64,000 nt of DNA, from contig ADNK01000421.1 in the NCBI GenBank assembly GCA_000320545.1, positions 68,044 to 132,043 on the forward strand, written 5' to 3'. Positions within the stretch are counted from its first letter, which is position 1. Each line of letters starts with the position of its first letter. Below are positions 7,780-49,254 of the stretch, in pieces. A program made the translations under genes and the position numbers. The notes under the pieces were generated by a model, which saw only the letters and a program-made list of their open reading frames with translations, was not told the origin of the DNA and made no database searches. Origin of the DNA: Bigelowiella natans CCMP2755. Lineage: Eukaryota; Protista; Cercozoa.

Positions 7780-8460
7780 ACACACCTAGATACGTATCGT
7801 AGCTCGGTAGTATTGAGTGTGAAATATCGTATACGCACGCATGACTCTAGAACTCATCACTGTGCATGCGATACTGACTAGTAGCTGACATCTCATGCAC
7901 TCGTCTGGACGCTGGCGTACCAGCATCAGCTTTAGGGCTATACTAGCTATATATGGAGCTATGGAGAAGGCTTGCAGCAGGCTAGCAGGGCATGATCTCG
8001 CCAATCTCATGTGTATAACTAGATCAAGACGGATGCATCACATGATGAAAGAAACGAATTTGGTCAATGGTCACCCAATCTAGCACTAGCTCTAGTAGCT
8101 AGCTAGAGCAATCTAGCAATTCATTGTGTAGCAATGCAAATTGCATGCACACTACACTACATGTAGCTAGATAGCAGGCTAGCTTCTAGCTGGCGTGCAA
8201 GGTATAGCAAAGCAAGCTAATGCGATCGATCGAATATCAGTCTATATCAGCAGGTTCATTGCCTCTAGCTATCACATTACATTCGGTACGTCTGAATGTG
8301 TATCTAGATGTACAAAGAGCTAGAGAGCCTGACATTGATCCTCTATCTGCTGGTGATCCCTGCTAGCCTGCCCCTAGCTTCGCTCGGTCTAGCTAGCTAA
8401 CAATCATTGTTATGACTATCATGCATAGCTACTAGATAGTGTATTTCTACTTTTATCTGC
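7780..8460. repeat. CTAG-rich altered island in a convergent spacer; contains a mutated LINE 3' end at about 8025-8146 (-)
   Basis: Dense CTAG/GCTAGC/ATGCAT. 8025-8084 aligns to LINE ends at 15775 and 48790-48865 (AGACGGATG..TCAATGGTCA.CC.AAT.TAGC). Confidence 0.8.
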
Positions 8461-8488: not shown

Positions 8489-9013
8489 CTAGTTAACTTT
8501 CACTTTCGCAACCACTGCATGTGAAGATCGAGGTATATTGACGAGCAGGGTCACAACAATTGCAACCAACGCTAAGGCCCAATCTGCAGCATTTCCCAAA
8601 CTTTCTAAATTTTCACGAAACAAATGCTCAAAATGATACTGTGGAGATATGTCCACACGAGAGGAGTGCGCAACGCCTTGAACCTCCTCTGTGAAAACAA
8701 GAATGACATCCAAGAAATCACGAGCTGTATCATACAGAAGCACTGCCCTTTCCAGCGCTTCGATCCAGCTGGACTTTGCCAGTTTATTTGAAATCGAATT
8801 TAAATTCTGATACAAGGCCTTGTAGTGTGACGAGATTGCTTCAATGTTTGTTGTCCCTGTCCCTACTGTCTTGTGCTTTGGCGAAGAATGGAGAATCTCA
8901 ACCCGGAGGGGGGATTCGGAGATAGAAGATAGATATTTTATTGCCTTGTTTGCAGTCTGAACAAGTATCGTTCACATCGTAGACAACACAAATTACAGTC
9001 AAATATATATATG

Positions 9014-15639: not shown

Positions 15640-16317
15640 TTGATCACGTGCTAGCGTGGTGAAATGCTAAAATGCAACTCACGAAATAGAATCGCTGCAC
15701 GTACATGCATGTGTCGATCATTGGCCACTCTAGTGTGCTAGCACTGAACTCATTAGATGGATGTAAGATGGATGTAAGACGGATGTAATGAATCCATTGA
15801 ATTTCCTCAATAGTCATCCCTTTGTAGCTGTGCAATGCAGCGGCTACAGCGCTAATATTGAATCTGTTAGTCATAGCTATGATGCTATGATGTAATAAAG
15901 TGATTAAATCACTGAAGTGATGAGCGAATAATGTTAACATGTCAGCTAGTTCTAGAATAGCTAGACAGCGAGCTAGCGAGGCTGCATATAGATCGAGCAC
16001 TTGAGCAGAATTTCGCAATCGCTACCCAAAAGTTGCATTGTCATATGTAGACTTGCTAGAGTGTGTGCTGCTCTACTGCTGCTGGATTGTCTTGTTCGAA
16101 GCTGGCATTGCTAGATTGGGAAGTACATCTATATAGACATGTTTGATTGCTGCTTGGACTATGCATTTTGCAATGTACAAATTAGGCACTTGATGTTGGC
16201 CACGATCGATCGGCGTGATCTAGCTCATTGCTTGTTGCTTTCTTTACAAAATGAAACTTGTTATTCAAGCTACATACATCTATATGCTTCATCATTGCGC
16301 AGTTGTTATAGCTCTGC
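15640..16317. repeat. CTAG/TGCA-rich altered island in a convergent spacer
   Basis: Frequent CTAG/GCTAGC between the FTR stop and the next gene's stop; contains a LINE 3' end. Confidence 0.7.
15755..15872 (-). mobile_element. 3' end of a non-LTR retrotransposon with a TTACATCC(G/A)TC repeat tail
   Basis: Encodes TNRFNISAVAAALHSYKGMTIEEI, nearly identical to TNRYNLSAVAAALHSYIRMTIETI at 48770-48845. Ends CATTACATCCGTCTTACATCCATCTTACATCCATCT. Confidence 0.8.
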
Positions 16318-27910: not shown

Positions 27911-28093
27911 ACAGACACTGTCACATCAAATACAGTCAATACTCAAGAATATGTTCATTTCTGGATTGGATAATGTTAATATAAGTTTCTTCAGATTCTC
28001 GCTTTTTTTTTTCCCCCGTTTATTCTCTATTCAGTGTCCTGTCTCCATTCTGTGTAGACTAATAGACGACGTGTATAGCAGATACTATGTCTA

Positions 28094-28133
28094 TAAGACG
28101 GATGTAATCAATTAACTTAAATTTGCTCAATAG
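28094..28133 (-). mobile_element. Short LINE 3'-terminal remnant
   Basis: The minus strand reads CTATTGAGCAAATTTAAGTTAATTGATTACATCCGTCTTA, matching the ends at 15775-15815 and 48830-48865. Confidence 0.6.
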
Positions 28134-28279
28134 CTACGTCTATTACTACGCTAAAAATTACTCTGCATGTGTCATTCCTCCTGTTGTGACTATCATCCTC
28201 AACAACGATACCATATGCGAATAATTGTCTTTTTACTATTTCTCAAGATTAAATTAATGTAATTAAAGTATGACATTGT

Positions 28280-45079: not shown

Positions 45080-45900
45080 TATCAGATCGCTTTCATGGCT
45101 TCATCCGAAACATCATGAAATCGCATCGATCGCATGAATGACCTCATTGCAAATGGTTCGTTTGCTCGTGATCGACTGATTTGCGCGACGCCACACTCTA
45201 GCACTGCTAGATCGACTGCTGCTCGTCGCCGCGTGTCATGACGATGCCCCATTTCATTCCCTGCTGTTCGTGGTAGCAAAAATTGCGAAAACGCGCAACG
45301 TGAAAATTTGTTGCCCACTGACAACCACTACTAGATCGAGCTAGACCAGCTGCTGACAACTGAATGTTGCTAGAATGACACATATGCATGCTGTGGCACG
45401 TGGTGAAAATCACGACAGGCACATCTAGCTAGCCACGTAGCACTAGCTAGTCTAGTAGTGCTAGCTAGAGCAGCTCTAGAGCTCTAGAGCTGACAGAGAT
45501 CGGAACATGCGCTAGCATAGAATGTTGTCTCATGGACGCACTGTCTAGCCATGCTAGCGCGCATGGCTGGATGGCTAGCTAGCTAGTCTAACAGCGACAG
45601 ATACGCTCTGCTTCAATGCAGCATGACGCTTAGCTAGATACACTAGTGTAGTCTAGTGGTAGTGCGAATGTGCCGCTACGCAGATCAAGCGATGCGGACG
45701 TAGCGTGCGCAGGCTAGCAGGGTCACTGTCTAGCTATGCACTGGAATGGTCTAGTGGCGTCTAGGCGTGTAAAAGCCATGCTGCTCGGCTCATCGTCTAG
45801 ATCGTGTTGTGTCAGAAAATAAATCTAGTGATGTTTGCGCAACAATGTGTAAGCGAGAATCACATCATCCCAGATGACAAAGATGTTCACTAGCTAGGAT
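45080..45900. repeat. CTAG-saturated, TpA-depleted island in a convergent spacer
   Basis: Hand count of about 23 CTAG in 45421-45800. In 45121-45420, 7 of 8 TpA are in CTA/TAG context. Confidence 0.85.
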
Positions 45901-48250: not shown

Positions 48251-48280
48251 ATGTCTCCTTTCAGTCGTTTCCTTTACTAA

Positions 48281-48865
48281 GGAGACATTGAAAAGGAAAC
48301 TGAAAGCACACAACAAAACAATCATGCGGAACGCCGAATTGAACTTCAAAACTAATTGGAAGAAAGAGGGAACCAAGGCCATGCATTTGAAAAAACTTGA
48401 TTTCTTGCCTGGCTCTCGGACAACAGGAATCACATTGAAGCTGCCAAGCATTGCCACATCATGGATGCGCGCCATCTGTGGTGTTGGCAATCTTGGTGCA
48501 TTCATGCTGTCCAGAGGACAACGCACAAAACTGGAAGCAACATGCGATGTGTGCAACACATTGCAAGACATGGACCACATTCTGCAATGCAGGAAATACG
48601 GACCACAGCGACTCAGAATCAACAAACAACTGACAGCGATCATGGATCGCAATGACGAGACCACGCGTCTCACAACCGCAGAGAAAACAAGTCGAGAAGC
48701 TGCGCGCAAAGCGCGCCATGCTAGACCAAAACAGGATGCATTTTCATGCATGCGCCATGTGACCAAGGAAACAAATAGATACAATTTAAGCGCTGTAGCG
48801 GCTGCATTGCACAGCTACATTAGGATGACCATTGAAACAATTTAAACATTTCATTACATCCGTCT
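48281..48865 (+). mobile_element. 5'-truncated non-LTR retrotransposon: ORF2 C-terminus with CCHC zinc knuckle and 3' end
   Basis: ORF 48288..48845 contains TCDVCNTLQDMDHILQC. The 3' end CATTACATCCGTCT is shared with other copies in the window. Confidence 0.8.
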
Positions 48866-49254
48866 CATAGATTATGAGATTTCTAGATTTGTTTGTCACA
48901 AAATCCGCATGCATGGATTGTCGAAGGAAGACAATTAATAAATCAAAACAAAATTACTCATACGTACGCTACGGCGCTATATATATCTATTTTCATACAT
49001 GCTCATGCATCATTCTCTATAATATTACATGTGCACAATTCATATAAGGAATATAAAATGCATCAAAATTCTTGCATGCTTACATACTGAGTAGTCGCAT
49101 CGGATCATATGCTAGTGCATCTACCCCCTGTAAGCATGCTAGCATGTACAAATCCGAAGTATCCTAGATGTTGCTTGCTCTAGTTCTTAATGATAAAGCT
49201 GGGATGTTCTTAAACTGGCAACGGTCCATTAATTCGCAGTTCTTTAGATTTTAT

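Follow-up and report, generated by a model that had tools for sequence, protein, structure and literature searches.

The window, that is, the whole stretch of 64,000 nucleotides of Bigelowiella natans CCMP2755 that was analysed (contig ADNK01000421.1, within an assembly of 91.4 Mb and 3736 contigs), contains an RGS and a kinase ORF and abounds in repeats of dinucleotides and of the trinucleotides TAC/GTA. Positions 7850–8460 form a CTAG island with 21 copies of this tetranucleotide in 611 nt. On one side of the island, ORFs on the plus strand end by 7444, and on the other, ORFs on the minus strand end near 8489. Judging by ORF orientation, the island is probably the spacer between two convergent genes; a Pfam search of the flanking ORFs returned no match. 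No other genomic copy of 7800–8460 was recovered, at a search sensitivity that also missed the kinship of the relic embedded in it. By its sequence, this relic (8026–8139) is a genuine, old and decayed fragment of the 3' tail of a non-LTR retrotransposon (LINE). The sense strand is the minus strand, with the 3' end of the element at 8026; the assignment was inferred from the orientation of the reverse transcriptase (RT) ORF in a related element, L062. The 3' part of the relic (8026–8079) and its continuation (8121–8139) are separated by a CTAG-rich block (8080–8120). Elsewhere in the window, the same tail is present as a 5'-truncated reference copy of subfamily A on the minus strand (15772–15885; nhmmer E = 7e-35), with tandem 11-nt terminal units just upstream, as a short 5'-truncated copy of 44 nt, also on the minus strand (28092–28135; nhmmer E = 9e-7), and as part of a full-length, young ~592-bp unit of subfamily B on the plus strand (48275–48872), which is 96.5% identical to the B consensus and has both ends in common with many copies.

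Genome-wide, a 161-nt query around 15775 yielded 1034 first-look candidates, with the scored matches being 82–88% identical over ~112 nt. The copies share a sharp end, (TG)TAAGACGG (also written (TG)TAAGACGGATGTAAT), from which they extend over 112 to >478 nt. Because one end is fixed and the other variable, the pattern, read on the opposite strand, corresponds to 5' truncation as in non-LTR retroelements. At the one locus at which contiguity with the tail was examined (L062), an ORF of 638 aa with an RVT_1 domain (Pfam, E = 1.9e-12; the sole Pfam domain matched) lies on the strand opposite to the tail-first reading and is contiguous with a tail at 20–507; a comparison of this ORF with solved structures gave no match. 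The element (L062:2–1918; G000:C1920:60000–61918) is a 5'-truncated LINE with a TpA rho of 0–0.2 and no CTAG, which adjoins a CHD/SNF2-type gene at L062:2912–6469. Its ORF is open through the tail, presumably following the erasure of TAA/TAG stops. The subfamily B unit (loci L033–L061 and window 48275–48872) gave 1453 first-look candidates, the scored copies being 89–99% identical and fixed at both ends, and has ~490 nt of 3' sequence in common with the RT-bearing LINE at 71% identity. Based on this sequence comparison, it seems to be a non-autonomous partner that was active recently, either SINE-like or a deletion derivative. The arrangement resembles that of known LINE/SINE pairs, in that a fixed-end unit of ~592 bp shares its 3' sequence with an RT-bearing LINE and the truncated LINE tails end at the same terminus.

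Several minor features of the tails were recorded along the way. The last 11 nt of the tail (TAAGACGGATG and variants) are often tandemly repeated at the 3' end (window ~15753–15785, L020, L025 and L037), partial tails occur in short arrays beside full copies (L037:1303–1358, 1386–1488 and 1496–2100), and several copies adjoin stretches of (TG)n, (TA)n or (GA)n (L007, L012 and L070). The TpA within the GTAG/CTAC motifs of the tail is almost never mutated, being kept in 34/34, 33/33, 42/47 and 39/42 cases, and the GTAGC...GCTAC segments (window 48795–48822 region) pair in a predicted hairpin; this retention might be due to selection for a stem on which retrotransposition depends. When the tail RNA was folded, the GUAGC/GCUAC hairpin appeared, with an energy no better than that of shuffled sequences (z = −0.35).

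Polarized against the consensus, the insertions in 97 family copies peak at 8 bp, with 15 insertions of this length versus 4 each at 7 and 9 bp. Of the fifteen, 12–13 have the structure XXXX-CTAG-XXXX, in which a 4-bp target is duplicated around CTAG, and one more carries CCAG in place of CTAG. Because these scars are private to single copies, with the consensus lacking them, and because the 8-bp peak is found among insertions only, the deletion spectrum having none, they represent insertions rather than deletions in the other copies. In the sample from which scar statistics were drawn (246 kb of the 91-Mb genome, with copies biased to the best-scoring ones), an exact 4-bp flank duplication accompanies 191 of 966 CTAG, with ~4 expected. 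The corresponding figure for the window is 41 of 239, and there only microsatellite tetramers rival CTAG in the proportion of flank duplications. Within the island, the CTAG of exact scars start at 7982, 8113, 8320 and 8363. The 172 scar targets conform to a loose, symmetric M-N-N-K rule (77% versus 24% of background 4-mers, p = 1e-52) and are enriched in CTAG (28-fold), CATG (14.5-fold) and AGCT (9.6-fold). Furthermore, the density of new CTAG inside family copies climbs with copy age (0.59, 0.88 and 1.95 per kb), with ~7 per kb in the flanks. Since no target is favoured more than CTAG itself, a scar makes further scars more likely, which accounts for the runs and islands. The cleanest anchored case, L027:1726–1757, is a palindrome of 32 bp made up of nested CTAG scars (4 × 8 bp), which sits in a tail copy of subfamily A and is bordered on either side by sequence that matches the consensus.

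When cut-and-paste elements excise, the footprint left behind consists of the target duplication and a few terminal bases of the element, as in relatives of Tc1/mariner. The CTAG scars are similar in that a fixed short filler stands between two copies of the target and in their stereotyped, strand-symmetric preference, but differ in having a 4-bp duplication of loose M-N-N-K sequence rather than TA and, unlike excision footprints, they occur nested within one another and accumulate into islands. A canonical footprint of this kind would result from a 4-nt staggered cut, with CTAG being supplied by the two ends (CT...AG) of the excised element, and our best guess at the agent is a putative cut-and-paste element that has CT...AG termini and duplicates 4 bp of its target. 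A scan of the 246 kb for a donor (CT...AG ends, inverted, 4-bp duplication) yielded two candidates, both probably due to chance, which tells against the footprint, as does the lack of such insertions among the de novo indels cited below.

The scar could alternatively be the product of host break-and-repair, whereby a break with a 4-nt stagger at M-N-N-K, mainly in the spacers behind genes, would be filled in at both ends and joined through a templated CTAG. We regard this as possible yet doubtful. The exact 4-bp duplication does imply a 4-nt stagger, the targets are strand-symmetric with palindromes (CTAG, CATG and AGCT) favoured, the insertions cluster in what appears to be a convergent-gene spacer, and the 246-kb scan did not deliver a donor. 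Nevertheless, no repair route that adds a fixed tetranucleotide is known, whereas stereotyped footprints combining a target duplication with terminal bases are known for cut-and-paste elements. Moreover, none of the 21 de novo indels from published mutation-accumulation lines followed over 3132 generations is an 8-bp CTAG insertion (Mettrop et al., 2026, doi 10.64898/2026.01.13.699255). A further, similarly tentative reading of the sequence pattern is that a host-encoded or domesticated nuclease or transposase cuts M-N-N-K with a 4-nt stagger behind genes, in which case the self-seeded CTAG islands would be either a by-product or a functional mark; on present evidence this seems unlikely. The literature searched contained no description of an 8-bp CTAG scar, and neither CTAG nor micro-insertion is mentioned by Mettrop et al. 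(2026). The repeat family and this locus add the polarity of the insertion, its age trend and its target rule, together with the rejection of a link to TpA described below; the nature of the agent is an interpretation of them.

Against this background, the structure of the relic can be read in some detail. That a LINE 3' end lies at this site, as the first-pass annotation had proposed from sequence strings that are all present where it placed them, is borne out by profile searches. A profile of 35 tail copies, built before the old subfamily described below came to light, matches 8026–8083 when the window is searched with nhmmer (E = 2.6e-4, 16.5 bits), and a second profile likewise detects the relic (E = 3.9e-5, 18.9 bits). 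The best-matching single copy, in L046, led to an old subfamily, recognizable by GATGYAATGATGAA, of which 13 matches were obtained in the genome; the profile of this subfamily spans the whole of 8026–8139 (E = 2.9e-7, 25.8 bits) and places a 45-nt insert between CCTAAT and GTAGC of the tail. An Rfam search of the window gave no match. The 3' part (8026–8079, minus strand) covers tail positions ~5–55 and its match begins exactly at the sharp terminus of the family. In alignments to L046 and L064–L075, it carries a 4-nt insertion, TCAC, at 8038–8041, where its own subfamily has GATGYAATGATGAA; this insertion is not a CTAG scar. In the continuation (8121–8139, minus strand), a few extra letters are followed by GTGTAGCAATGCAA, compared to ATGTAGCTGTGCAA in the tail.

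When the block 8080–8120, which was delimited without the use of the LINE profile, is cut out, all three profiles cross the junction and reach 8139, with scores rising from 16.5 to 22.2, from 18.9 to 25.5 and from 25.8 to 33.4 bits, and E values ranging from 4.3e-6 to 1.3e-9, the latter for the subfamily profile. The homology therefore runs on to 8139, with the reservation that the right-hand anchor (8121–8139) is short, at 14–19 nt, and that the gain of 6–8 bits follows the removal of a block chosen by ourselves. By contrast, plain pairwise or consensus alignment of the right-hand half gives no signal over shuffled sequences or other island segments, as nested scars defeat ordinary gap models. 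Accordingly, the alignment originally drawn for this locus holds to ~8079 and, as written, is no better than chance beyond ~8083: on its right-hand side, 145/300 and 76/300 dinucleotide shuffles, and 75% of 306 segments from other CTAG islands, score as well.

These figures bear on the view that the relic is nothing but a 5'-truncated tail of ~55 nt (8026–8079), while the CTAG block, the match to GTAGCAATGCAA and the rest of the right-hand sequence would be pre-existing island DNA with a chance resemblance to the tail. Short truncated copies do exist, the 44-nt copy at 28092–28135 being one, and the failure of plain alignments on the right-hand part counts in favour of such a view. However, the nested block begins exactly on the CAAT of the tail, after its removal three profiles, each built independently, gain 14 further positions in register and 5.7–7.6 bits, and copies of the same subfamily in L065 and L072 display a similar junction sequence, which together render the shorter version decidedly improbable. 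The longer relic, ending at 8139, might be followed by an additional remnant of the tail at 8140–8147 (minus strand), where ATTGCAT stands for ATTGTAT, another TA-to-CA change, in a short match colinear with the consensus and the L046 copy that is not significant alone and needs a deletion of ~16 nt. The AAATTGCAT anchor at 8139–8147 could possibly belong to the tail given the same assumed deletion.

Judging from the tail sequence on its two sides, the CTAG-rich stretch 8080–8120 is an insertion inside the LINE relic. It had previously been taken for an insertion of 19 bp; its position inside the LINE holds, and its content proves to be 41 nt of nested 8-bp scars. Once a single extra T at 8096 is set aside, five exact XXXX-CTAG-XXXX units can be peeled one after another from 8076–8120, leaving a bare CAAT (8076–8079), the derivative of TAAT in the tail on which the block was seeded. 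From the outermost inwards, the peeled targets are AGCT, CTAG, AGCA, CAAT and CAAT, among which AGCA departs from M-N-N-K. In 3000 permuted blocks, in which the six CTAG were kept fixed and the other 21 letters permuted, five removals were never obtained, the maximum being three. The nested parse requires the one assumed extra T, and exact peeling without its deletion removes one scar only. With this proviso, 8076–8120 provides a fully resolved five-step example of nested CTAG insertion and, if a nuclease or transposase is indeed responsible, the relic would be a letter-by-letter record of five successive insertions. Because the derived CA is present in each half of the CAAT scars, the TA-to-CA change came before the insertions; the same order, with the TA change preceding the scar, is found in L004 and L013. 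At the other end, a CTAG scar with one mismatch, ATAA-CTAG-ATCA, may span the 3' junction of the relic (8015–8026); it is uncertain, since with 21 CTAG in the island, chance alone would be expected to produce about one 3-of-4 match of this kind.

The second mark borne by the relic is the loss of TpA. Relative to the family or subfamily consensus, TAAG became CAAG, GTAA became GCA, TTAA became ACGA and CCTAAT became CCCAAT, and, relative to the A type, TATG became TGTG, with GTAG being retained. Altogether, 4–5 of the 5–6 ancestral TpA were lost (three to CA, one to TG and one to CG), the sole survivor being that in GTAG. The TA-to-CA changes at 8025/8026 and 8036 and the change of CCTAAT to CCCAAT are as the first reading of the locus described them. 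Eight TA are present within 8023–8146, six in CTAG and two in GTAG, and 8026–8083 contains no TA outside CTAG. Among the 97 family copies, transitions amount to 11.2% per base at TpA versus 2.4% at other A/T, the loss of TpA per copy ranges from 0 to 100%, and TA-free tracts of 1.5–3 kb have sharp borders. Hypermutation of TpA to TpG/CpA has been described for integrated foreign DNA in B. natans (Mettrop et al., 2026). Judged by the substitutions, the loss in the relic matches this published process, so that the TpA part of the phenomenon was already known; the changes would have arisen either in the copy itself, mutated as a repeat, or in a mutated source lineage from which it was inherited. 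The likeness extends to TpA transitions in both directions, to their occurrence in tracts and to the presence of reverse transcriptase sequences among TpA-poor DNA. The difference is that the published study caught the process live in two integrated viral regions only and recognized it by composition elsewhere, whereas here the ancestral state is read site by site from a retroelement consensus, which adds a confirmation of the same kind in retroelements.

The base following TpA has a modest influence, editing being 8.7% where G follows the A versus 13.7–17.1% for A or T. An absolute protection of CTAG from TpA editing was considered and rejected, as this effect of the 3' base is only about two-fold. 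A spectrum limited to strictly private substitutions, which displayed no TpA excess, was also set aside: it filters out recurrent changes at the same TpA, and the excess is seen when all differences are counted. Fungal RIP resembles the process in that it, too, inactivates repeated or foreign DNA through hypermutation by transitions at a particular dinucleotide. However, RIP changes C to T at CpA and thereby creates TpA, whereas the changes seen here run the other way, eliminating TpA and raising G+C; RIP as the process was rejected on the consensus polarity, which runs from TA to CA/TG.

TpA hypermutation and CTAG insertion are separate processes. Non-CTAG TpA depletion shows no correlation with the number of CTAG across 483 windows of 500 bp (Spearman −0.016); the 2-kb LINE stripped of TpA in L062 lacks CTAG altogether; TpA is at an ordinary level in CTAG-dense flanks and is retained by the copies inside them; and TA-containing tetranucleotides make up 15.7% of the 172 scar targets versus 17.3% of background 4-mers (p = 0.69). 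The first-pass annotation had instead envisaged that islands are transposon relics remodelled by one TpA-centred system, through TA-to-CA changes, GTAG-to-CTAG changes and CTAG-rich insertions at TA. It is true that TA-to-CA changes and CTAG insertions coexist in the relic, that the seeded site is a former TpA and that 7 of 15 polarized targets overlap a present or former TpA, but given the above observations, the intact GTAGC of the tail at 8128–8132, which makes a GTAG-to-CTAG substitution unneeded, and the mostly unique, non-repeat nature of the island DNA, this model is largely refuted and as a whole hardly credible. Its expectation that, in an alignment of genomic copies, indels would be enriched for CTAG and centred on TpA came true in its first half, as the 8-bp peak in the 97 copies attests, and not in its second. 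Nor are the islands transposon relics overall. The LINE-derived part of this island amounts to ~114 of roughly 610 nt, the search of the genome, at its limited sensitivity, gave no second copy of the island, the non-CTAG TpA rho of the island is ordinary (0.84 versus 0.76 for the window), and young copies lying in CTAG-dense DNA are almost unscarred (0.6 new CTAG per kb compared to ~7 per kb in their flanks).

Taken whole, the locus is best explained, with a probability of about 0.8 in our estimate, as a decayed LINE tail lying in a unique CTAG-rich spacer and marked by both TpA hypermutation and nested 8-bp CTAG insertions. Under this explanation, TpA-to-CpA/TpG hypermutation would have stripped the relic of 4–5 TpA. 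An 8-bp insertion, consisting of CTAG and a duplicated 4-bp target, would have struck the former TAAT, by that time CAAT, and insertions of the same kind would have struck their own products four more times, building the 41-nt block. As every insertion would make new preferred targets, such self-seeding would be how the islands thicken.

A family with more than 1000 candidate copies supplies an ancestral letter for each position and thereby turns two compositional oddities into countable events. The CTAG-rich sequence comes down to one stereotyped 8-bp insertion, which nests in its own products, accumulates with time and selects its targets by a symmetric rule that has nothing to do with TpA. 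This narrows the candidates for the agent to an enzyme that cuts M-N-N-K with a 4-nt stagger or to an element with CT...AG ends, and counts of scars in dated repeat copies offer a ready assay.

Further observations concern the two mutational processes beyond the relic. In full-length alignments of subfamily B (e.g. L044, L052 and L047 against window 48275–48872), two adjacent sites read CACA in some sub-lineages and TGTG in others, and many further sites differ by TG versus CA, a pattern which suggests that an ancestral TA was mutated on opposite strands in different lineages, in strand-coherent events. Among the de novo insertions listed in Table S2 of the mutation-accumulation study (doi 10.64898/2026.01.13.699255), 7 of 15 end in ACA (e.g. 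TGACA, CCAACA, TACA and TACACA), a regularity that the main text apparently leaves undiscussed. Finally, two segments of the window, 45150–45900 and 58000–58500, combine a low non-CTAG TpA rho (0.39 and 0.11, respectively) with a high number of CTAG (31 and 8), so that here the two processes overlap.
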